A stretch of DNA of 43,625 nt from Ministeria vibrans ATCC 50519 (taxonomy: Eukaryota; Protista; Filasterea), in contig CALSCP010002090.1 of NCBI GenBank assembly GCA_943704425.1, positions 1-43,625 on the forward strand, in the 5' to 3' direction. The notes under the pieces were generated by a model. It searched no databases. It was given only the letters and a program-made list of their open reading frames with translations, and had not been told where the DNA came from. Within the stretch, counting starts at the first letter, position 1. Each line of letters begins with the position of its first letter. The translations under genes and the position numbers were made by a program. Shown here piece by piece: positions 1 to 23,507 of the stretch.

Positions 1-51
<51 letters not shown>

Positions 52-60
52 AGTGATAGA
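1..60. repeat. (GA)n microsatellite followed by one AAACAAAGTGATAGA motif, inside the MFS gene intron
   Basis: Directly visible; the same motif recurs at several other loci in the window. Confidence 0.95.
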
Positions 61-317: not shown

Positions 318-602
318 CATGTAGCCCACAAAGGGAAACAGCGACGTCATGGTCAGCGAGTTGCCGAACATTGTCAGTGACAAGATTCCAATCACAGTCC
401 ACGAGAGTGCGTTTTTAGGCGGCGCTTCTTCCGCCTTCAACGCCTCCTTGCCTTTCTTCGCCTTCCGCGTCCATCCGTGGTTGCTGTTCGTAGAATCCAC
501 ACGTTGCGAGCGCTCTTCCTCCTCCGCTTGAGCGCTGCATGACTCGATCGACAGCGAATCTCCCTCATCCGCCATAATCGGCGAATTGGCGCGATTTCTC
601 AT
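318..602 (-). CDS. First coding exon of an MFS transporter (ZIFL/Tet-like); gene continues left of the window
   Basis: Hydrophobic TM1 VIGILSLTMFGNSLTMTSLFPFVGYM resembles the ZIFL-type 'SLFPF' segment. GTAAG donor at 317. Start is ATG 602 or 575. Confidence 0.7.
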
Positions 603-768
603 CCCAAAACGTGTCCTATAAGTTCCACTTGACTCGCCCACAACCAAAGCAGTCAAGTCCCAAATATGACAGGAGAAAAATAAAAATAAAAGAAAAAGTC
701 TATATTTTCAATAATTCTCTTCTATTCACATCAAATCATTCAGTAGTAAAATTTTAAAGCAACATCCC

Positions 769-861
769 TCACGAATTGCCATCATAAAATGCCCTCAGCT
801 CTTCGCACTTTCTCTTTTCCTACTCACATTATTCAACAGTCGGTCACATATATTTCTTTTT

Positions 862-953
<92 letters not shown>

Positions 954-2422
954 GTCTCTCTCTCTCTTACCGCTCGATCACCCTCAAAGTCGTCAAACAT
1001 GGTCTGCACCGCCTCATCAAAGCTGTCAACAGAACCCTTGAAGGCACTCGACTCACATTGCTGGCGCAGATTTTTCAGCCGCTCCACAAAGAGGGTCTTG
1101 CCAATGGGGTGCGCCTCAAGCTCAGACACGCGCGTCAACATGACATTCTCCGCACTCTTTGTCTTCGTCTTCTTCTTCGGCGATGCGCCTGCTGATGCCA
1201 CGTCGGGCTCGGGTGCGTGAATGGGACACAGCCAGGGACCGTCGCCGCTGGTGGGCGTCTTCGTCAACTTGGCACACTTGACATGCATCGACACAGTACA
1301 CTTGTCACCACCACAGCGCAACAGTAGTCCTGTCGTCTTCTGGCAGCCTCCACAGTAATTCTCGTGCTCGACAGTTTCATCATCGTCTTCATCAATCACA
1401 CGCGCACGCTTGCTCTTCTTCTTCGTCTTCTTCTCATCACCACCCGCCACCTCCTCTTCTTCCTCACCCTCATTCTCTTCATCCTCTGACTCACTCTCGT
1501 CGCTTTCGCTCTCGTCACTTGCTGGCGCTCTCTTTCGCTTCTTACTCTTCTTCTCCTTCTTGACCTTCTTGGCCTTCTTGACCTTCTTCTCCTTCTTCTC
1601 CTTTTTGGCCTTCTTGGCCTTCTTCCGCTCCTTCTTATCGCATAACGCACACATCCACCCGTCCGCCTGAGACTTCTTCAGCGAAGCACACGCCGGATGA
1701 ATCACAGTAGAGCAGAGCACACACGGTACCAAAACACCGTTGCCCTTACCGCACCTGACACACTCCGTATCGTGCTCGTCCCCTTCCTTCGCCATCACAG
1801 ATGTCTTTGACTCTCCTTTCTTTTTCTTCTCCACACCTTCTAAGCTCTTCTTCTTTGCTACGCACACGTCACAGAACCAATCGTCGTCCGGCACACATCG
1901 CAGTTCCACGCAACGTGGATGGGCCACCGCATCACACCCTTCGCACAGCATCAATGAACCCGAACTCTTCTTGCACACCCCACATTCGCTCTCGTGCGTG
2001 TCTTCTTCTTCTTCGTCTTCGTCGTCTTCGTCGTCAACAACACGTTTCTTTGTTGTCTTCTTCTTCTCTGTCTTCTTTGGCGACGCACAATCGGGACAAT
2101 ACCAGTCGCCGCGTGGCACCGCACGCAGTCCTACACAGTTTGGATGTGCCACAGCATCGCACCCCTCACACAACATGAGAGAGCCTTTGCTAGAGTGACA
2201 CACGCCGCAGTCGTCGTCGTGCGTGTCCTCTCCCTCCTCCTCATCCTCCTCTTCTTCATCGTCATTGTCGCCACCACGCTTAGTCGAACACCGTGCACAG
2301 TACCAGTCGTCATCGGGAACACGTCGCAGTCCGACACAGCGTGGATGGGATACAATTGGACACGACTCACACAGCATGAGCGAGCCCGAGCCACGATTGC
2401 ACACACTACACGAGTCATTGTG

Positions 2423-2464
<42 letters not shown>

Positions 2465-5400
2465 CCCCACCTCAAAATCGTCATCGTCATCATCATCGTC
2501 GATAAACGACGCCGCAGTCGCACGAGTCGTCTTCCGTCGCTTACTTGCGTTGCCCTTGCCGCCTCCGCGAGACGACGCAGGAGCTGCACGCTTCTTAGCA
2601 CTACCACCACGCTTCTTCGTCGACTTCCTGCTGGCCTGACGCAACTTGCGTCGCTCCGCTCGCGCCTTGGCCTTCTCTGTCTTGCGATTCACCCGTGCCA
2701 CACACTTGGCACACGTCCATGTGCCACGAGGCGCCCGCGTCAACTGAGCACACGACAGGTGATACGAGTGCTCACACGTGCCACACACCAACGTCTCAAA
2801 GAAATCGTCCTCCTCCGCAGCTCGACACACACGACACACGCCCTTGGCGAGCGGGCTACCGTCGATCTCATCGTCTTCTTCTTCTTCTTCGTCGTCGTCG
2901 TCCTCCTCCTCCGACTCCTCGTCACTCAAGAGTTCCTCACTGTCGTCATCACGGCCACCGTCGTCCATGCCCTCGTACAGACCTCCGCCCGTGCGCGAGC
3001 TCACGCACTTGGGACAGCGCCAGTAGCCGCGCGGAACGTTGCGCAGGCCAAGACAATCAATGTGATAGGCGCGCGGACAGGTGTCACAGCAAAGAAGTTC
3101 GCCCGCGGAGTGGCAGGCGAAACACTCATCATCATGGTCAATCTCCTTGTCGTCGTTTGCATGTTGACGGTTGCGCGTTGGCGACGACACAGACTGAGGC
3201 TTGCACGCGGTGCACAGCCAGTCGCCCTCAGGAACCTCGCTGAGCGGTGGCTTCAAGCAGAACATGTGAAAGACGAGATCGCAGCCTTCGCACACGAGCG
3301 TCTTGTCGGCGTGCGTCTTCTTGCGACACACCTGACACTTGGCATTCTCAATGCTCTTGTCCCAGCACACAAATCGGTCAAGCACGCCGACGCAGAGCAT
3401 GAGCTCGCCAAGACTCTGCGATCCACGTACCACGTGTAACAGTCGCGAAAGGCACGTCTCGTTCGCATCGCCTGCCGCCAGAAGGTGCACATCCACCGTC
3501 GCCGTCGACTCGCCCGCCTCCACATCTGCTAAGGCGGCTTTTCTCCAAACGGCCACACGTTGCAGCTCGCGTGTTACTTGTTTGGCAGCCGCGCCGCTCC
3601 CAAGCGGCGCAGACAACATGCGCACCTCGACTGACTCAATGAGACGCGCCAGTTCGTGTCCAACCAATGAGATCACCTCGCGAACCGTGTGCGACGATGG
3701 CGCAGCGGTGTTGGCACCTTCAGACTCGCCGTCGCCGCTGCCACTATCACTCGACTTCTTCTCTCTTGGCGCATCACTGGCGCGTCGCCACTGTTTCAGA
3801 CGATCATGCCAGGCATCCCGCTCGTCTTCAGGCACGCCTCCAAGTAGCGCGGCAGTCAAACGATCTTCGAGCTCGGCCATTTCATCGAGGAGCGCCTTGA
3901 GGTAGGTGCCATCTGCGGACTCCTCCTCGGCAACCTTGGCCGCATAGGCGAGTCCTTCGGCCAAATCGGCCGTGTCTAGTTCGGTGAGATCCTCACCCGC
4001 CAGCGACGATGGCTGAGGACCACTAGCTTTGGTGCCCCGTCCAGAGCGAACCGTCGCCTCGCCGACACGATGCTCTTCGCCAAGTACGTTGGCAAGAAGC
4101 TTCTCGCGCAGTGCTCGCTCGCGCACACCACGTTGCTCAAGGGTGGTGGCAAAGGCTACGGGGTCAACAACGCGCGCAAGAACTGACGTGTGTCCATCAG
4201 GCGCAGTCGTGACGGCAAACCAGCCGGGGAGCGCGTGAAAACGCCAGTAGGTGCGTCCACGACGGTCGACACCAAGCGGCTGAGAACGCGAGCAGCCTTG
4301 TGAGTCCCACAGGCGTGCCCGAATTTTTCCCTCTTCCGCCTGACGCTTGCGTAGACGCTTCTCCAGCGCGAGTCGCTCCGTCTCGACACGTTCGGTGGTA
4401 TGACGATGGGCCAGCGCCTGCTCGCGCTCAAAACTTGTGTTGGCCGCAGCCNNTGTGTTGGCCGCAGCCGCACTCTCGGCCGAAGCCTGTTTGCCCTTCT
4501 TGCTACCCTTGGCCTGCGTCGTAAGCTCCAGTGCCGCGGCAGCCGCGGCACTCTGAGCGTCCGTCGCTGCCTTGTTCTTTGCCTCGAGTTCCTCTTTGGC
4601 TTCCTTCTCGCGCTCGCGCTCGTTCTTGCGCAGCTGCCTCTCCGCTGCGTCACGCTCCATGTCCATACGTCGCCACTCGGCGAGTGTCTCGCGCAACGAC
4701 TTGCGCGCGTCAAAATACTGCTCGTGAGACTCATCGATGCGTTGCGTTGCGTACTCCGTGACGCACACGGCGTCTACAAGCTGCTCAAGAAGCACCACTT
4801 TGTCTCGTGCGAGCAGATCACAAAACGCAACGCGCTCAAGTGATGCAAGCGACTCGCTCACGCCCCCCTCGACGACATGACCACGCGCCAGCTCGTGCGC
4901 AAGAAACATGTGGAGGAGCGGTGAAAGGGTCACGGCGTTGACATGGGCGAGTTTGAGTGGGAGACGCATCACAGCGTCGAGAGTCCTGCACGAGTCGGAC
5001 TCGAGTGCAATCTTGAGCAACTCAATGGCAAGCAGCACTGAGCTGCCCTCGACGTCCGTGTCCATCATGGCATTGCCCACACCGGCCGGAGTGGAAAACG
5101 CTGCGGGCAAGTGAAACACGTCAAATACGGCGGCAAACTCGACAACGGCCACCGCACGCATAATGAGGTCGACGGGCAGTGGTAAAGCAAGGGGTGTGAG
5201 TTCGCCCAGGGCACACGCATCGGCAATGTCGTCGTCGTCGCGAATGCGACGGTTCTCCCTCTCAAACTGACGTTGCTTCTCTCGCTCCGCCTTGAGCCGT
5301 TCGCGTTCCTGCTCTCGCTTCTCCTTCTTCAGCCTCTCCGCCAACACGTCCGCCTGCTTCGACTTCTCGTCCATGCGCTTGAGCGCTTTCACATCAAGCT

Positions 5401-7690: not shown

Positions 7691-10600
7691 ATGCTCAAAA
7701 TGATGCTGATCACCGCGGTGGCAGCGCTTGTCCTTTGCACTGTTCAGGTCGACGCTTCAACCCAACGATCTCTCAACGCGCTTCAGGTCCTCTTGCCGCT
7801 CGCCACAACTCGCGACGATACAAGAATAAGCGTCAACTTCACGCTGACGGGCCCACCCAAGGCGCGCTACAAATGGTAAAGCAGCGTCTGCACGTTTTGT
7901 CGTTTGTCCTCTGCTCCCGTCGCCTCCCCCGTCTCCCGCCATCCCCCTCTTCCCCCTCCCCCTTCCCCTTTCTCTTCCTTTCCCTCGTCCTCTCTCTGTC
8001 TCTCTCTCTCTCTTTCCTTCTCTCTCTCTCCGTCTGCCATGCTTTCTTTGATATTTCCCTTTGTCGACAATCGCGCTCAAACGTTTTTTTTTTTTTTTTT
8101 TTTTTAAAAAAANNNNNNNNTTTTTTTTTTGAAAAAAAACTCGGGTTTGACTTTTTTCAGGATGTCGACGATGCCACAAGTTGCGTCGGTGTCTGCGCTG
8201 GCCGACACGTCGACCGACCTGGCGATGCACCCGTCACAGCGCGTGACGCGGTCTGCCGTGATCGAAGCGATGTCTACATCGCGCGAACGTGCGTCGACAT
8301 TGATCATGGCGGAGGAAGCCACGACGGGCAACCTGCTGCGCTGCGACGTCTTTGTGGACGCCATCACGCGCATTGAGATCATCACACGCACTCGTGTATT
8401 GCACCTCGACGACGTGGAGCTCTTTGAAATTGCTGCGTTTGACAGCGAAGGCAATCTCTTTTCTAGTCTCGAAGGTAACGAATGCTTTTGTTTCTCTCAC
8501 TCTTTCTCTCTCTCTTTCACACCCTTTCTTCTTTATCTTTGCTAAAATTGATTTTGGTAGGACTGCGATTTCAATGGGAAATATTGAGCAGTGGCGACGG
8601 TGTGCCGGGTACGAGCATTCTTCAGTTTGAGTCGTTCCGTCTGTCAAGCGTCGACGTCTCGACAGTCGTGGAGAATATGGAACGCGCCGGCATGCAAGGC
8701 GATCGAGTACTGGTGCGAGGCATTTCGACGGGCACTGCCTTTGTGCGCGCGAGCGTAGTCGAGCCAGGCCACGAAAATGTGCCGTCGTCCAAGGTGAAAC
8801 TGTCGGTGATTGAGCCATTCATGCTCGAACCATTTGAGGCCATTTATCTTGCCCGCTACGCCTTCCTTGCCTACCGCCTGCGACGCAGTCGTGCACCTCG
8901 CGGCGAGTATGTGCAGCTTCCCAGTCCGCAATACCTCTGGTCCGTCACCAACAACAAGATTCTCGAGCTTGCCGAGCCCCGCAATGGACTGGTCAGCGCC
9001 CTTGAGCTCGGCGACGCCACGCTTGTCGTCGTCGACAAAAACATGACGGAGAACGAAGCGCGCGCTGCCATTCATGTTGTCGTTCCCGCCTTTATTGGCT
9101 TCTTTGTGCGCCCCATTATCTCGTCCAAGGGGGCCCCATCCACTGCTCCTTTTAACACCGACGACAACAATTCCCATCCCTTTGCTTCCAGCACGTCCTC
9201 CTCTGCATCTACTCCTTCGTCGTCCTCCTCCTCCACCTCCAACTGGCACCTTGAGCGCGGGCGCGAATACGAGTTTGGTGTGGAGCTTTTTGACGAGCAC
9301 TCGCATCGCATGGTCATTTCGGCCAATGTCGTCTTTGGCACGGTCGTGCCCGAATCCCACCTCACGGCGCTGAGTGCCTCTTCTAACCACTCCCACTATC
9401 ATGTACGACCACACCGGAGTGGCGTTGCCATTGCCACTACCTCTATTAGCGACATCAAGGAACGTCTCAATCGCGGCGGTGTGTACACGCTGCCCAAGGC
9501 ACTCTCGATGCGCCAGGAGATTCACATTTTTGAGCCGGTCGTGGTACAGCCGCACGTTGTTCGGCTGCCTCTGTACGGTGCGTCGGGCGACGGTGAACAC
9601 TCGTACCGCGTCAACGTCACCGGCGGCTCCGGCTCTTTTTTGTGGGACTCCGACTCGTCACCCGTGGCCGTTGTCAACGCCTCGGGTGTGGTGACGGGCG
9701 GCGGTGCGGGGCGTGTCGCTGGCACTGCGCGAGTGGTCGCTGTCGATCGTCGCAATCATTTGCACCGCGACACGGCCAAAGTACTCGTGGCGCCCACTGC
9801 GTCAATGCGCTTTATGCCATCGCGCGTGGAAATCACCGTTGGACAGCAGTTGGTGCTGCCCCTTGCAGCGTTTACTGCGGCGGACATCGAGGACGCAGGC
9901 ATGTTCCACAATTGCTCGCGTCTCCTGGTGCACTACCGTGTTGCCGATCCCACCATGTTTCGTGTCGTGTCGCCGGCCGATCCGGATTTTGATGTGTCCG
10001 TTCAACTGATTGGCGAACAAGGATGCACTACGGTCGCTGTCATTGCCCTGCGCGAGGGTCATACGACACTCACGGCCCTCTACCGTGACGGCATTCAGGC
10101 GGACGTGACACTCTTTGCGTACCGTCCGCTTGCCGCCGTTGCTCCCTCACCCATGCCCATTGTGGTCTCGTATGGCTCCATGGCAACCCTCGTGGTCGAA
10201 GGCGGTCCTCGTCCGTGGCTCTTTGACACGACGCTGCACGCCGAGACAGTCACCGCCAGTGTTCCCGAGAAAATCCTTCTGCTCGATCGCGTTGACAACG
10301 GAGCGAGTGGTAGCAACAGTGGTGGTAGCAGCCACCACCACAACCAAGTGGCCGAGCCACAGCCGCGTGCCTACCCTCTTCATGCGATCCAGTATACGGA
10401 GCAGACGTTGACGGTCACATGTGGCAATCGCCCTTCGCCTCAGAACCTCTATCCGGCTCGCGAGCAAATCACCATCACGTTTGTATGTGCCAATCCGCAT
10501 CGCATTGCCGTGCATCCAGTGATTACGCGCCCTGCCCTCGGCAGCGATGCTTGCCCCGGGAGTAGCGAGACCGCCGTAGGCGGCAGTACAGCTTATACGG

Positions 10601-13377
10601 TGGTACAGGTGCGCAACAACCGCACCTTGCCTTTTGCGCTGACGGTGCTCGACGCCAAGGAGCGCCCCTTTGCCAATGTGAGCACCATCAAATTTAACTG
10701 GTCGCTTGACGATAGTGCGCGTGTCACGGAAATTGCATCCCTGTTACCCCCGCCGGCCATTGTTGGTGGCGAATGGCCCGCGCGTCCCGGTCGTTCGGTG
10801 CGACTGAGCGCCACGCGCGGCATTGCCAAGCTCACCATTGAGACCGATGGCTTCTTCGTACCCGCTTTTGTCGAGACGGTGCGTCTGGAACATGCCACCA
10901 AACCACACAATGATGGAGCTGGTGCTGCTGCAGGCGATGCGGCTGCCAGTGCTGGTGATGCGGCTGCCAGTGCTGGTGATGGACGACCGCCGTGGTCGTT
11001 GCCACACGTACTGCAGACTCTTGAGTTGCGACTCGTGCGCAATGCACGAGTGATTCCTCCTCATTTTTCGCTCTTTTTCGATCGGAACAACACGGTGGTG
11101 CTCCCCGTGTTTGATGGCTCTGGACAATTTCGCGTGAGTCTCAATGTCTCGACCCTGACGAGCGCGCATTATGATGCCAAACAAAATGGAATTGCTCTGA
11201 CACCCGCCGCTTGCTGTGGCGGCGTTCTTTTGCGCGTGTCCGACTTGTGTTTGGGCGACTCGGACGATGCGCTTGTGAGCGTCACGGTCAGCAAGGTGCA
11301 CTCCTTTGAGGTGGTCGCACCCGAACATGTGATGCTGGGGGCGCTCGAGCCCACGAATGTACGTGTGCTCGACATGTACCAGCGTCCATTTCCTCGCTCG
11401 CAGCACACCGTCATGAATTTGCGTCCGGTTGTCACGTCCGACGTGATTGTCCTCACGCCCAAAGCGGTGGACACGGATGATGGCAAGGGATCGAGCGAGA
11501 GTGAAGATGGTGCGTGGCATGGACGCCTTGTGGCCTCTGACGGCGAGTACATCTTGCATGGACACCATCTGGGCAGCAGCCAGTTAGCATTTTTGGCGGG
11601 CGGTGCGCGTTCGTCGCAGTATCCCGTTCATGTATTCTCGCCGCTTGCGCTTGTTCCCGGCAGTTTGTGGCTCGTGCCTTCGGCGGTATTTCAAATGCTA
11701 GCGACTGGTGGGCCCTATGCGGGCGTGAGCACACGTTTCCAACTCGAAAACGACACGGTGGCGCACGTGAGTGCCGTGGGGGTGGTGAGCGCACGTCGCG
11801 TGGGCACCACCACTCTGACCGCGACCTCCGTTGCAGTGGGTCGTCCGTCCAAGGTCGACGAAGACTCTGCGAGTTCTGCCACCAAAACGGCGACCTCGAC
11901 GATGACTAAAGGGAGCGCGCACGCACAACCTTTGCACCCAACCAAGTCGGCACTTTTGCAAGAGCAAGAGTACGCACGTGACAGTGGCACTGTCCGCGTG
12001 ACCCAGCTGAGCGGGATTGGTATTCGTGTGTCGAGCACACGCATTGTCGCCGGATCGCATGTGCCTCTGGAGGTGGTGGGCCGCGATGGTGAGTCTGCCT
12101 TTGTGTTTGCGACCGCCCCGTCGCTGGCATTCGACTGGTCCTGCAAAGAGTCTGCCATTGCCATGCTCTGGCCAGGAAATCGCCGTTCCAACATTGTCGG
12201 CGCGAGGGCCAAAACGACAACGACGACCACGACCACGACCACGACGACGAAGAGTAAACATGGGGGGCACACTAGCACGACGGGTGATGGTGGCGATCGA
12301 CTGTCGTACTACGGCGTGGGCGGTCACTCCGCACTGCTCGTGACCAGTGCTGCTGGTGTTGTGGGCGTGTCGGTGACGCTGACGTTGCGCCCCGACGTGA
12401 TTGAGCAACTTCAGGGGGAACACGACCGTCCGCTCGTGGCCGGCGTGGACCAGTTGACGGCATCTATCCAGTTAGAGATTGTCGAGCCACTGCGTCTGCT
12501 CACGCCCACACGATTGTTGTTGCCACCGCACGGGAGTGCGATTATTGTGACGAACAAACGGCGAGTGCTCTTTCAGGTGACATGCGACTGTGCGACGTCG
12601 TCCCAGAAGGCGCCTATCATCCAGGTGAACGAGCAGGGTGTGGTGACTGTGGTGGGCGACGCAGGGGGCCAAGCACGAGTGGTTGTGACGTCGTACGACG
12701 ACAATGTGAACCAGTCTGCCGTGGTGGTGGTCGAGGTGCATGCCATCACGTCGCTCGTAGTCACCGAGCGATCCGATCAGGCGGACGCGGCGACGACAAG
12801 TGGGGCACTGACGAGTCTGCCACTCGGTCTTGACGCTGCGTATGAGATTGTGTGTGTCGACGAGCACGGACGTCGGTTTGATTCGCTTGCGGGAGTGCGC
12901 TTTGTGCTGGTGCTTAGTCGCCTGGACGTTCTCACCATTGTGCGTGGTGGCGGAGGAACGGGCGAGAGTGAGGCTGGTGAACAGGTGGAGCGCGCGGCCA
13001 ATACCCATGTGGTCCATGGTGCAATGAATCGGGCGCGCACCGCGTTTACGGTGCGTGCTGCTGGTGAAGGCGACGTGCTGCTGGCGGTCACTGTGGAGAG
13101 TGGGGGCAACATCACTATGACCACCTCCAAGGGAGACGGTGAAACAGAGACATCATCATCATCATCATCATCATCATCAACGACAACAACAACAACAGCG
13201 AATAGTAAAGCTGAGAGCATCAAGGCACGGCAGACACGACGAGGCGGTCAGAACGATGTGGAGCAGACGGCTCGTGCGTTTGTACACGTCCATGTGACCC
13301 ATGGACTCTTGCCCCACATGCCCATTCTACATGTGGGCTCGACCATTCAGTTTGCGCCCACTTTTGACGTGGACTCT

Positions 13378-13408
<31 letters not shown>

Positions 13409-14541
13409 CACAGTGGTGGAGCTCAGACGACGATCGAGTGGTAACGGTGGACGGACGGACGGGTGTTGCGACGGCGGGAGCACTTGAGGGACGCTGTGCG
13501 GTCCACTTCAACAGTTCGCGGGCCAAGACGCACACGCGTGTGCGAGTGGCGCGTGCCCTTATGATGGAAGCAGACGTGTCGCGAGTGCCATGGGTCTCCG
13601 ACTTGCCCACGAGTGCGCGCTTTCGTGTGCCGGTGGACTTTCGAACGGGCGACGGCCTGAAGTTTACTCACACACCTAAAGGAATCCCCTTTTCCTGTCG
13701 TGTGAGTCCCAGTGAGATTCCTCTTGAGTGTGCCGCCGAGCTGAACCCGGAGACGGGCGAGCACGCGTGCGTACTGGCGCCTCAACAACAAACGCATCAA
13801 GGAGCAGGCGATGTTGCGCAGAACAATGGCAATGTGACGGTGCATGTGACGGTGGGCGGCACCTCGTTTGAGTATGCGCTTCGCTATGTGCCTGCGTTCC
13901 GGGTGAGCACGACGCGCGTGCGTCTCAACAGTGCCGAACCCAACATGCTAGTGCGTGTGACCAATGCACGGGAGCACCTGCGGTACATGCGTGCGTCGTC
14001 GGGCGATGCACACGTTGTCGATGTGAAGGCGCTTGACGATAGCAACGGCGACGACTCGACGCTTCTTGTGGAGATTTCAGCGCAGAAGAAGCTGTTGCGA
14101 CAGCGAAAGCCGTTTACCGATGTGCCAGTGCACTTGGTTTCGACGCTGACGAACCAACGAGTGGAAATTCTCGTGTCGTACGTGGGCTCGACGGCTCCTC
14201 CGCCGCCTCCATCTACGTCGCTGGCGGTGGATGGAGCGGGCGCACGCGACAGCGACGCTGGCGATGCTACCTGGCTTGTGCTCCTTTTCCTGCTTGTGGT
14301 TGCTCTGCTTGTTGCACTAATGTTTGTTGTGGCACGCGCACGCAGCGAGCAGGCTCCACAAGAGCAGCCGCAGCAGCCGCGTCAGACGTTTGCGCCGTCG
14401 ACGCCCATGACCACCCCGCGTACGCCGCTGGTGCCTTCGTCCGCTGCCGCACATGCCATGCGAGGCTTTCAACACGACCGGTTTGGGTCGCCTTTCAAGG
14501 AGGTGCGTAGTGAGGCAATGGACATGTACAAAACTCATTGA
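7691..14541 (+). CDS. NUP210: Nuclear pore membrane glycoprotein gp210; about 2159 aa
   Basis: Exons 7691-7875, 8161-8474, 8561-14541. Signal peptide then LNALQVLLP. Conserved LRCDVFVDAITRIEIITRTRVL and AFDSEGNLFSSLEGLRFQW. Long Ig-like beta-rich lumenal region, single C-terminal TM (WLVLLFLLVVALLVALMFVV) and an S/T-P-rich tail. Confidence 0.93.
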
Positions 14542-18849: not shown

Positions 18850-18887
<38 letters not shown>

Positions 18888-18905
18888 CTTTGTTTCTCCC
18901 TCCTT

Positions 18906-18962
<57 letters not shown>

Positions 18963-19001
18963 CTTTGTTTCTCCCTCCTTTCGCTCTCTCTCTCTCTCTA
19001 T

Positions 19002-19034
<33 letters not shown>

Positions 19035-19042
19035 NNNNNNNN

Positions 19043-19089
<47 letters not shown>

Positions 19090-19330
19090 AGTGAGAGAGA
19101 GAGAGAGAGAAACAAAGTGATAGAGAGAGAGAGAGAAACAAAGTGATAGAGAGAGAGAGAGAAACAAAGTGATAGAGAGAAAGAGAAAGAAACAAAGTGA
19201 TAGAGAGAGAGAGAAACAAAGTGATAGAGAGAAAGAGAAAGAAACAAAGTGATAGAGAGAGAGAAAGGAGGGAGAAAGAAACCAAGTGATAGAGAGGAGA
19301 GAGAGGGAGAGAGAGAGAGTGTGTGTGTGA
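18850..19330. repeat. Array of TATCACTTTGTTTC-(TC)n units, inverted across an N gap (19035-19042), between convergent genes
   Basis: About 2-3 CT-strand units left of the gap and about 8 GA-strand units right of it. Confidence 0.9.
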
Positions 19331-19549
19331 TGGGAGTCACATTATTCAATGGATCCTCATTGCACTTGTATCATTATTCTTCATGAAACTTATTATTTTC
19401 TTTCTTTTGGTATTGACTTACGACGAGGATTCATTTTTTACAGAAAAAAGGGGAGAAAGAGAAAAAAGAAACAACAAAACAAAGCAAAATTAAAAAATCA
19501 AGAATTGAAACGACACACAGATCAAAAATAAGATAGAGAGAGACAGAGG

Positions 19550-20777
19550 CTAGACGAGACCACATGCCCTAAGGTTGTTTGTGATGATGATGTCTGTGAC
19601 GTCGGTGAAAACATGCATAATGTTGTTGGTGTCGGTGGCGCATGTGTAGTGCGCATAGACCTTCTTCTCGTCACCAAGGTCCTTCATGTTGACAAACTGG
19701 TCTTCAATGTACGCAGACGCCTCTTTGAACACGTTTAAGCCTACGCCAACAAGAGGTGGTTGAGTTGAGTTGCCTGAGTCATGTTGGGTAGTGGCTTACC
19801 GGTGTATTCGGGGAAACAGCGAGTGAGCGGCGACTTTGTGATCTTCTCGTTGAACAAGTCGGTTTTGTTGAGGAAGAGAATGATGGAGGTTTGACGGAAC
19901 CATTTGCTGTTGCAGATTGAGTCGAACAGCCGCAATGATTCTTGCATTCGATTCTGAGAGAGAGAAGAAGGGAGAAAGTATCAGTAATAGTGATAGAGAG
20001 AGGAGGAAGAAAGAAACGAAGTGATAAAGACAGACAGAGAGAGAGAGAGAGAAAAACAAAGTGATAGAAAGAGAGAGAAAAAAATAATAGAGAGAAAAGA
20101 GGGAGAAAGAAACAAAGTGATAGAGAGAGAATAAGAAGAAAACAGAAATAAACAGTGATAGAGAGACAAAGTGAGAATAAGAACGACAGAAAAGGAAAAA
20201 AAGAAGACAACTTACCATTGTGGGGTCTTCGACAAGAGTGAGATCGTACGCTGATAATGCGACGCAGAAGATGATTGCAGTCACATTCTCAAAGCAGTGA
20301 ATCCACTTCTTTCTCTCTGACCTTTGCCCACCCACATCAAACATCCTGCAACCCACACGCACATACACAAAATCAGTGCACGGAAAAACACACACATGAC
20401 ACTCAATACGCGTACCTAAAGTAGATGCCTTTGAAGGAGAACTTAGTTTCTACAATGCCAGACGTGGTGACGCGCGTTCGGAGCACATCTTGCTCCACCG
20501 GCACAAAGTTGGGTGCCGAGATACGTGCAAGGTCGTCCAAGTAGCTGAAATGGAGAGGGCAAGTGAGAAAGGTAAGTGTTAAAAAATACAACGGCATTTC
20601 TCGACTACTCACTATTTCGCAGAGTCGAGCAGTTGATATTCTCTTGCACGCTCAAAGCATTCTTGGACACCACCGTCGGCCCATAACAAGCTGATTGCTT
20701 GTGCAAGGTCCGGTGTGAACTCTTCAGCTGTGGTAAACTCGCCGCGTACGCTTCTCACAAGGTCCACCGACGACTGA

Positions 20778-20808
<31 letters not shown>

Positions 20809-21095
20809 AAGGAGGAAAAGAAAAAGACAATGAGAAGGACGAAATAACAAAACGAACAAGAGACAGAGAGATGAGTTGGATACTAAAAACAAAAACAAAA
20901 AACAACTCACCTCCAAAGAGTCGTCCGCCAAGGGAATTGCCAGAGTTGCCATCGCGCGAACGATCGACGAAATGCTACTGAGGATGTTGTTGAAGATGAC
21001 GACGCGGAAGCTTAAAAATTCCTCGGTAGTGTAGCCACTGGCGTGAATGATCTTCATCTGCTTGACAATGGTGGACTTGCCACTCTCACCCGCAC
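19550..21095 (-). CDS. Heterotrimeric G protein alpha subunit, Gi/o class (exons 2-7; canonical first exon missing)
   Basis: Exons 21095-20911, 20773-20613, 20544-20416, 20345-20216, 19953-19800, 19740-19550. Motifs [36 protein letters not shown]-terminus NNLRACGLV with Cys at -4. Confidence 0.95.
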
Positions 21096-21866
21096 CTGCG
21101 AAAAAAAAAAAACACACACACACAAAACGATGAGATGGGCGGCGGAGGCGTACAGAGCGGTGGTGTGATAAGAGGCGGCGGGACGGGGCGGGGCGGTCAC
21201 CCCTCAGGCAGTCACAAAAAGAGATTCGGAAGGTCCCTGACCTTTGCTCTTTTTTTTCTCTCTCTCTGTTTTTTTTTTGACAAAAAATAATAATAATAAT
21301 ATCGAAAAAAAAAAAACGATTCGGACAAGCGAATGGGTTGCCAACAGCAAAGGGAACGATTCGGGGAGGGATAAAGGGAGGCAGAGGACAGGCAAGCGAG
21401 GAAGGAGGGGCAGAATGGGGGGACGACGTGGGTTTGGGTTTGGGGGACGGAGAGAAGATGACGACTGCGTTTGGCCACCCTACTGCTGCGGTGTCGGCCT
21501 CGACGCAGCGCACACGGCGACCGCCCCACGCCACCAGCCCCCTCCCCCCGTTCGCCCCGCAAAACCACACGCGGTGCAGTGCAGTGCGGGCAGGCGCCAG
21601 CCACGCCGACGCGCTTTCCAAGGCGCGGCCAAGGAGCGAAAATAGAGAAAAAAAAAAAAAAAAAAAAAAAACGGAAAGAAAGAAACAGACAAAAGGAAGA
21701 CAAGGAGAGCGGCAGACGACTGCATATCCACGGCAACGCATTTAGTCGTCCATGCACAGCCACCCGTTGGCGAGGCTGCACAGGAAACGGCCGTTGTCCA
21801 CTGCGTTGAACTCAAACACCCTTTTTTTGTTTTTTTGGTTGGGTTTCCGACAGCACGGCTCCTTAC

Positions 21867-21918
21867 CAAACTCGCGTCTTTGCCAGTCGTTGCCAATGAT
21901 CGGTTCAGCGTCACTCAT
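21867..21918 (-). CDS. 52-nt first exon MSDAEPIIGNDWQRREF, resembling the BRK1/HSPC300 N-terminus; phase-1 donor
   Basis: ATG at 21918 and strong G|GTAAGG donor. IxxDWxxREF matches the BRK1 signature as I recall it (I.QDW.NREY/F). No downstream BRK1 exons found. Confidence 0.5.
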
Positions 21919-22017
21919 TAAAAGGAAGGTGTCGAGCAATTTGTTTGATCAAGAATTCAAGATTTAAGATTCGACTCATTCTTCTGATATTCGTTCTTTC
22001 ACTTTCTTTTGGATTAA

Positions 22018-23507
22018 ATGGAGACGGACGGAGAGGAAGACACGAGTCTGTATGACGACTCGAGTATTGACGAATCCCTGGGCGTGGTGCGGGTGCCGGG
22101 TCTTGCGCCCGTGTGGCTGACAGAACTCGCCAGCGATGTAAACTTCGATCGGTATCAGCCCGTGAGACACACGGACAATCACGGGGAGTCCATCATGAAA
22201 GTACGTCCACGCAAGCAAAGATAGGACACGAAAGGGGAAGTCCAGTAACAGATGGCGTTTTAGGGGACAACATTCAACTCATCCACCGGATGGAATCACG
22301 CGCTGGTTGAGACGTTCATCTCGCTGGGCGACGAGGCGCTCGTTGCCGAGGCCGTGCACTTTGTCGACCGTGCCTGTGACACCGACCTGTATGTACACGC
22401 GGGCCCCATTGCCGCAATTTTGGACGAGGTGGGTGTAAATGGGAAGGCAAAACGTTTTGCACGACACAGACAGTTGTTTGTTGACCTGTTTAGGCACTTG
22501 GACGAACTGCAATGGCAAACGGAACACCCGGACCCACACTGAACCTTCGAGTGGAGTACCACGCCCCCGTGCCTGCCAACACCACCGTGTCGGTGCGAGG
22601 CCGAGTAGAGCGTGTCGATGGGCGCAAGGTCAGTCTTGTTGCCGTCATGTCGGAAACACCTCTGTCGCCTGCGCTCGCCACTGCACACGGCCTCTGGCTT
22701 ACCTTCAACCTTGCCTCTATTGGAATCGAATCCAAGCAGCAAGATCGCCAAGCGTCGTCGTCGTCGTCGTCGTCGTCTGCCGCAATGCAGCAAGACAGGA
22801 AGGCACAAAAAAAGAAGAAGAGTAGACGGCGCACGACAGCCGCACTACTGCTGACCACTCCGCGCTTATGGAATCTCAAGGCACGATTCCGGCGAACGCC
22901 CACCAGCGCACATGATGAATACACATTCATCCATGAAACACTCCGCCCGGCATCCGAGCCACAGACGCCGGAGTGGGCGCGCGCGCTGGCACACAGTGAC
23001 TCGCTCGAGTCGTGCAGTGCACGCGTGCTCGCACAACACCGCCGTCTCTGTCGCCGCCACGACGCAGATCATGTGATACTGACCAGTCAGCGCCAGTGGT
23101 ATGCCTACTACCGTGTGCGTTCCGCCACACCCACTCCCACGAGCAACTCAAGTGCCCTTGTGGCGCTGCATACCTTTGGCTTCTACTGTGAAGGCCCCCC
23201 GGGCTGTGTCCATGGCGGCTGCATTGCCACCGCCCTCACAAACGCCGCCCTGGTGCTTGCCCGTGGCTGCGGCACCGACTCGCATGCTCTCGTCGCAGCC
23301 CATCCATGCACCCTGCACGTCCGTGCCCTCTCCATTAACTACCGCAAGTTTACTCCTCTCGGCGAGACGTATCGTCTCGATTGTCGCTCTGTGGGACCTC
23401 CCTCCGACCTGCGCTTCGACTGCACGCTCTCCAGTCCTCTGTCAGACACCCTCCACGCTCAAGGCTCAATCCACCTCGCAAGGAGACCCGCTCCCTCAAA
23501 ATTGTAG
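22018..23507 (+). CDS. Tandem (double) hotdog-fold acyl-CoA thioesterase, PaaI/THEM4-like, with C-terminal PTS1 (SKL)
   Basis: Exons 22018-22200, 22264-22428, 22494-23507. Domain 1: VHAGPIAAILDEALG...TLNLRVEYHAPVP. Domain 2: EGPPGCVHGGCIATAL...LSINYRKFTPL. Ends PAPSKL*. Confidence 0.82.

Follow-up and report, generated by a model that had tools for sequence, protein, structure and literature searches.

The G-alpha gene in the window (the whole stretch of DNA analysed here, 43,625 nucleotides, which is the entire contig C2090 of a gapped assembly of 29.7 Mb in 2860 contigs) lacks its first exon on this contig. The explanation that we favour, with a probability of about 70%, is an assembly fault inside intron 1, either a misjoin or a dropped segment, with the true first exon lying at positions 14057-14177 of contig C1786. 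On this reading the locus would be an ordinary seven-exon Gi/o-class G-alpha gene whose intron 1 was broken by the assembly. An earlier note on this DNA had described a G-alpha without its own first exon, with a BRK1/HSPC300-like exon in its place. The absence stands for contig C2090, where the entire contig, scanned in six frames for the expected exon end (Lys or Arg, four aliphatic residues and a Gly codon split by a donor), yielded no credible exon, but it does not stand for the genome, in which a match was located on C1786. The observation is hence accurate for the contig, and the appearance of trans-splicing or of a BRK1 fusion is most likely an artefact.

The gene body in the window is made up of the following exons.

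21095-20911, minus strand: G-alpha exon 2, entered in phase 1, with the P-loop (G)AGESGKST at its start
20773-20613, minus strand: G-alpha exon 3, helical domain
20544-20416, minus strand: G-alpha exon 4, switch I region
20345-20216, minus strand: G-alpha exon 5, switch region
19953-19800, minus strand: G-alpha exon 6, NKTD guanine-ring motif
19740-19550, minus strand: G-alpha exon 7, C-terminus ...NNLRACGLV, stop codon at 19550-19552

These exons were read and phase-checked one by one; they were searched singly, and their lengths were only summed. The acceptor of exon 2 reads ...tcgcag (21096-21101, with the AG at 21096-21097), and on the minus strand the GT at 21095 completes a split Gly codon that is followed by AGESGKST, in agreement with the earlier claim that exon 2 opens at the P-loop. 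The downstream exons had been described as intact, and this was borne out: exons 2-7 presented AG/GT borders when read directly, with donors GTGAGT, GTACGC, GTAAGT or GTAAGC, and continued to the stop codon at 19550-19552 without sign of decay.

In a Pfam search of the whole genome, exons 2-7 spanned positions 24-333 of the G-alpha model, and exon 2 alone scored 60.6 bits against a PF00503 cut-off of 48.8 (E 1.9e-16; positions 29-86). The same exon aligned with residues 41-98 of Gi1 in PDB chains such as 7vh0_B, and its closest relatives presented 59-70% identity across it. The features that define the Ras-like and helical domains of PF00503 were all found in the gene body, including the P-loop GxGESGKST, switches I and II, and the NKxD and TCAT motifs. 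Its top relatives in the PDB and other databases were Gt (transducin), Gi and Go, and the protein carries a Cys four residues from its C-terminus (...R-A-C-G-L-V, stop), as is typical of the Gi/o type. Judged from its sequence, the gene body in the window is of the Gi/o class (Gi/o/t-like), and it shares with the animal GNAI/GNAO type the P-loop, the switch regions, the NKxD motif and the Cys at position -4.

Upstream of exon 2, the window presents three features that bear on the missing exon.

21096..21866, minus strand: apparent intron, 771 nt, no N
21867..21918, minus strand: ATG exon-like ORF, 17 codons (MSDAEPIIGNDWQRREF) and one G, with gtaagg at 21866 as the donor
22018..22197, plus strand: first exon of a hotdog thioesterase, a divergent gene that bounds the region upstream

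The structure that had been reported for this region was recovered in each respect: the intron described as gap-free and of about 770 bp measures 771 nt and contains no N, the ATG exon with a phase-1 donor consists of 17 codons plus the G at 21867 ahead of gtaagg, and the thioesterase ATG (22018, plus strand), placed at about 100 bp beyond, lies 99 nt from the ATG at 21918. The donor gtaagg of the ATG exon is similar to the other donors of the G-alpha gene, and the stretch of the ATG exon occurs only once in the genome. A search for a second copy of window positions 21096-21930 in the assembly found none, and an Rfam search of positions 20900-22100 returned no family near any gathering score. 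The ATG exon may be genuine and open another gene, or it may be an ORF that arose by chance in the 99-nt space ahead of the thioesterase. The stretch that adjoins exon 2 is the genuine 3' part of G-alpha intron 1, and the 771-nt interval as a whole is, on sequence grounds, most likely composite, joining non-adjacent DNA or omitting a segment.

Left unspliced, the ATG exon stays open for 58 codons, up to a stop at 21739-21741 (minus strand). Within this frame, the GT..AG interval 21866-21801 (66 nt) is in frame and stop-free, so that the spliced and unspliced versions share a ...N-G-W-L-C-M-D-D end. The 58-codon read-through ORF returned no family match.

The genome-wide search for a G-alpha N-terminus, a check that the earlier note had named, located a first exon 295 nt short of the poly-T end of contig C1786. 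Gene bodies were identified by searching all 29.7 Mb of the genome with the Pfam G-alpha model, and first exons were sought with the first exon of the C774 gene as the query. Only three G-alpha gene bodies were detected, on C774, C434 and C2090, and the query returned exactly three first exons, those of C774 and C434 and the orphan on C1786, the last with a match at 14063-14179 of 59% identity (E 2e-6). The three first exons are as follows.

C1786:14057-14177, plus strand: orphan G-alpha first exon, with an ATG start, 40 codons of which the last encode K-L-L-L-L, a phase-1 G and the donor GTACGC
C774:64379-64504: paralogue first exon, in cis, upstream of the C774 body
C434:9985-10113: paralogue first exon, in cis, upstream of the C434 body

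In both paralogues, the first exon lies 0.9-1.2 kb upstream in cis and is separated from AGESGKST by a phase-1 intron at the same place; this intron in the Gly codon before AGESGKST is common to the window gene and both paralogues. Since two pairs of the three bodies and three first exons are in cis, the orphan exon most likely goes with the window gene.

The assignment of the C1786 exon to the window gene is also supported by the complementarity of their ranges and the fit of class and frame. The orphan exon covers Pfam G-alpha positions 3-28 and abuts the 29-86 range of exon 2, and in PDB searches it aligns to Gi1 residues 3-40 (E about 1e-5 to 1e-9) in the same chains as exon 2. When two full-length Go/Gi-type proteins (P0086 and P0044) were compared with the genome, residues 3-39 mapped to C1786 and the sequence from residue 40 to the end mapped to the window. 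The N-terminal helix and first beta strand (KLLLLG) of PF00503 are accordingly absent from the window and present at C1786:14057-14177. Joining the phase-1 donor on C1786 to the phase-1 acceptor at 21095 yields GGT, the Gly of the P-loop, and the lengths of the seven exons (the C1786 exon and window exons 2-7) add up to 1071 nt, or 356 codons and a stop.

Evidence of a shared class came also from the relatives of each part. Among 1.84 billion representatives, the best relatives of the orphan exon were Go/Gi first-exon ORFs with 58-63% identity. Conversely, the N-termini of the nearest cDNA-like metagenome relatives of exon 2 reached scores of 103-111 with the C1786 exon, compared to 89-91 with the C774 exon and 63-68 with the C434 exon, the margin of the C1786 exon over the C774 exon being modest but consistent. 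The region upstream of the orphan exon comprises a spacer of approximately 1.2 kb followed by a delta-COP-like gene on the opposite strand, an arrangement indicating that the orphan exon has its own promoter region.

The match between the two parts bears as well on the possibility that the C1786 exon belongs to a fourth G-alpha gene, the rest of which is unassembled, with exon 1 of the window gene being unassembled too or the window copy being truncated at its 5' end. This alternative, which we consider unlikely, is in keeping with C1786 simply ending past the exon and with the fragmentation of the assembly into 2860 contigs with gaps. It would nevertheless need two independent losses instead of one, in a genome of 29.7 Mb that presents three bodies and three first exons only. 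Class, phase and residue boundary, moreover, match exactly between the two parts, and window exons 2-7 are free of the decay that a truncated copy might present. Were a fourth gene the explanation, the case would still be a matter of assembly and annotation, involving no new biology.

The position of the orphan exon in its contig provided the main indication of how the two parts came to be separated. Contig C1786 terminates 295 nt past the orphan donor, in ...GAGC followed by T8, and arithmetic on the assembly totals puts only approximately 6% of assembly positions at 300 nt or less from a contig end. Simple repeats were present at 6 of the 10 contig or locus ends inspected: (GA)n at the start of the window and (TTA)n at its end, a T run at the start of C253, (AG)n at the start of C2221, (GA)n at the end of C72, and C1786, which has T runs at its start (GTG, then T17) and its end (T8). 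An orphan exon placed at a homopolymer contig end, in an assembly that breaks in simple repeats, favours an assembly fault. The combination expected of a misjoin, a contig end in low-complexity sequence with complementary gene parts on separate contigs, was thus observed. The interval upstream of exon 2 contains three runs at which such a join could have been made.

21648-21671, minus strand: T24 run (A24 on the plus strand), likeliest misassembly junction
21305-21316 and 21101-21112, minus strand: T12 runs, alternative junctions

In the mechanism that we propose, the 3' part of intron 1 would have been joined, somewhere between 21866 and 21096, to the unrelated promoter side of the thioesterase and the short ATG exon. 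Two first introns with long T runs would have been confused, leaving the arm with G-alpha exon 1 without a partner and attaching the arm with the thioesterase promoter and the ATG exon to G-alpha exon 2; alternatively, a segment may have been dropped at a T run. The join probably lies at one of the three T runs, the T24 run being the first candidate. From the sequence evidence we infer that the C1786 and window pieces are true neighbours on the chromosome and that the contiguity of the window across the interval is false. Of the four readings that the earlier note had put forward, a chimeric assembly at an A/T tract is therefore the one favoured by the presence of the C1786 exon at a poly-T contig end, while split genes joined by trans-splicing, a reciprocal rearrangement or invertible segment, and a real BRK1-G-alpha chimera gained no support.

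Several observations delimit this mechanism. The C1786 tail shares only low-complexity matches with the window and, with no overlap beyond such runs, the junction point is not located. Against a misjoin, the interval contains no N, and the assembler crossed other homopolymers of 22-31 nt in C2090. A two-locus swap would predict a fourth piece, namely a contig that opens in a T run and on which the gene of the ATG exon continues, and this was not found. A search of the assembly for alternative copies or haplotigs of the C1786 ends revealed none. Scanning metagenomes for the predicted exon 1-exon 2 junction yielded 0 matches, the metagenome relatives of exon 2 presenting at most 64% identity. 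A scan of a genome contig collection for the C1786 tail also gave 0 matches, and look-ups of the exact ORFs in public records came back empty, in collections that may omit records close to this genome.

The case resembles the repeat-induced misassemblies of short-read and pyrosequencing drafts in that the C1786 arm ends in a T run while the other contig runs through T24, and in the presence of duplications flanking gaps. It differs from them in that the junction is not located and the fourth arm of a two-locus swap was not found.

The T runs at both ends of C1786 also suggested a model in which the whole of this contig had popped out of the T24 run of the window, and this model was rejected for the head side. 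The T run at the C1786 head is preceded by GTG, which does not match the CCG in the window, and this GTG matches instead an internal region of C1786 at 3551-3686, which belongs to a LUC7-like gene (intron 1 and exon 2). The 41-nt piece at the C1786 head is in frame with the ATG exon, but a stop appears three codons into the next candidate exon.

If the assembly were correct, the gene could be genuinely split, with its parts trans-spliced, or two phase-1 introns could have been broken and reciprocally rearranged in this strain. Giardia is known to join split genes, among them those for Hsp90, dynein and a helicase, by genic trans-splicing (PMC8494341, PMC5224939) and, as in those genes, a donor-bearing exon and an acceptor-bearing body are here found on separate pieces. 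The donor and the acceptor are both good, their phases are compatible and the window interval is free of gaps. We regard a split gene as very unlikely even so, because the exon-1 locus ends at a homopolymer contig end rather than in further assembled DNA, both paralogues are ordinary cis genes and no second exon of BRK1 adjoins the orphan exon. The intron halves, furthermore, show no excess complementarity. When the 295-nt C1786 tail was paired with the 771-nt window interval, the duplex reached -171.8 kcal/mol, compared to -168.8 +/- 7.2 kcal/mol for 200 dinucleotide shuffles, 73 of which attained the observed value. This lack of complementarity, together with the contig break after exon 1 and the cis-spliced paralogues, sets the case apart from the Giardia split genes.

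The ATG exon might instead be cis-spliced to 21095, giving a 333-residue protein that opens with 17 BRK1-like residues, either as a real chimera or through an alternative first exon. The frame is kept from its phase-1 donor to the phase-1 acceptor, and gtaagg is, as noted, similar to the other G-alpha donors; joining in frame is expected by chance in one case out of three. Such a product would be devoid of the N-terminal helix and of the first beta strand, KLLLLG, the latter being present in every relative retrieved. The KLLLLG strand is part of the core sheet of G-alpha proteins. The existence of a canonical first exon on C1786 and the non-significant likeness to BRK1 also argue against a cis chimera, which we deem extremely unlikely. 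Only a slight probability attaches likewise to the broader proposal of a Gi/o gene in two pieces, with a promoter-bearing exon 1 standing apart and exons 2-7 placed behind the exon of a small gene, possibly BRK1, and expressed through a trans-spliced mRNA or a cis chimera.

The identification of the 17-residue exon with the start of BRK1 had rested on a motif of 5-7 residues, and it drew no support from the searches. BRK1/HSPC300 is a coiled-coil protein of roughly 75 residues with L-N-E-K-L-x-x-L-E-R as its conserved C-terminal core, and the D-W-Q-R-R-E-F near residue 11 of the exon resembles the D-W-x-N-R-E-F/Y of BRK1/HSPC300 proteins. A phmmer search of the PDB, including WAVE-complex structures and admitting E values up to 10, found no match to BRK1 with the 58-residue ORF or with a 24-residue stretch, and the top matches of the ATG-exon ORF were prion fragments with E about 1. 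The ORF matched no family in Pfam and nothing in the ESM Atlas. The comparison with BRK1 hence consists of a short N-terminal D-W-x-x-R-E-F in common, the differences being that only 17 residues are available here, that they obtained no significant PDB or Pfam match, and that the core motif was not located; a similarity test on 17 residues has little power.

The remainder of BRK1 had been reported as absent from the window, and the motif search agreed, finding the core neither in the window nor on C1786, with the proviso that a motif split by an intron or left unassembled would escape it. Across the genome, the core returned 0 exact matches and 30 matches with up to 2 mismatches; 10 of the 30 were translated in context, one of them being examined closer, and none of these 10 presented a BRK1 context. 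The search for a second D-W-x-N-R-E-F/Y exon in the genome returned one look-alike (C2037:15638-15658), which lacks a BRK1 continuation, and no second exon of BRK1 was found on C1786 beside the orphan G-alpha exon.

Genes for two large subunits of the WAVE complex were identified in the genome, CYFIP (Pfam FragX_IP) at C1789:2154-5440 on the plus strand and NCKAP1 at C2505:6840-12173 on the minus strand, and their presence leads to the expectation of a WAVE complex and of a BRK1 gene. The WAVE regulatory complex has BRK1/HSPC300 as its smallest subunit (PMC10318009). We consider it possible, if doubtful, that a BRK1 gene really begins with the exon at 21918-21867; this exon would otherwise be a chance ORF.

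The protein encoded by the C1786 exon and window exons 2-7 would depart from the animal Gi/o type at its N-terminus, though not from the G-alpha family. Where animal Gi/o proteins start with M-G-C, and with a Met-Gly N-terminus for myristoylation, the C1786 exon starts with M-S-C-C (C1786:14057-14068). An in-frame stop lies upstream of the orphan ATG and there is no earlier ATG. The paralogues begin with M-G-L-C (C434) and M-P-L-C (C774). The two Cys residues of M-S-C-C could, judging by the sequence, be palmitoylated, there being no Gly2 to accept myristate, and this N-terminus would suggest membrane anchoring by palmitate only in a protein of the Gi/o class.

Should an assembly fault be the right explanation, the result is a correction to a gene model, with no further biological content. 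The Gi/o-class alpha subunit would then be complete, with 356 residues, once exon 1 is taken from C1786, and contig C2090 would be unreliable between 21096 and 21866. This is relevant to counts of G-protein or WAVE-complex genes in this genome, where automatic annotation would yield either a G-alpha cut short at its N-terminus or a spurious fusion.

Contig C1786 presents further irregularities, which count in favour of an assembly fault. Its first 105 positions (C1786:1-105), comprising GTG, T17 and the 41-nt exon-like piece, reproduce at 97% identity the intron 1-exon 2 stretch of the LUC7-like gene at C1786:3551-3686. The 41-nt piece encodes D-I-G-E-C-S-K-T-H-L-P-N-H-K and is flanked by AG and GT, and the copy contains a 27-nt indel and diverges completely past position 105. 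Either another haplotype or a partial duplication could underlie the copy, or this end of the contig could be chimeric. At C1786:3201-3445, a gap of 7 N (3320-3326) carries the same 119 nt on both sides, including the start codon of the LUC7-like gene; this is a typical duplication at an unclosed gap and a sign of local assembly faults. A 750-N gap is located at 10183-10932 of the same contig.

Other genes on C1786 include a long armadillo-repeat gene at 480-2700 (minus strand), with near-identical repeats of 42 residues, and the delta-COP-like gene at approximately 11200-12900 (minus strand), which lies head-to-head with the first exon of G-alpha. A 98-codon frame at C1786:72-365 (minus strand; ...Y-D-C-E-K-I-P-R-T-G-F-V-L-P-P-N-K-Y-R-F-Y...) yielded no match in Pfam, and an 83% DNA copy of it is present at C1105:33018-33117.

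In the window, downstream of the G-alpha stop codon (18850-19350), arrays of (CT)n and 'ctatcactttgtttc' lie opposite their reverse complement, which is found on the other side of a gap of 8 N (19046-19053). The 'ctatcactttgtttc' unit also fills G-alpha intron 5 (approximately 19960-20210), opens the contig (window positions 1-60) and recurs on C774 and C2037. The (CT)n/'ctatcactttgtttc' unit could belong to a satellite-like repeat dispersed in the genome, and the arrangement at the gap is possibly a fold-back artefact of the assembly.
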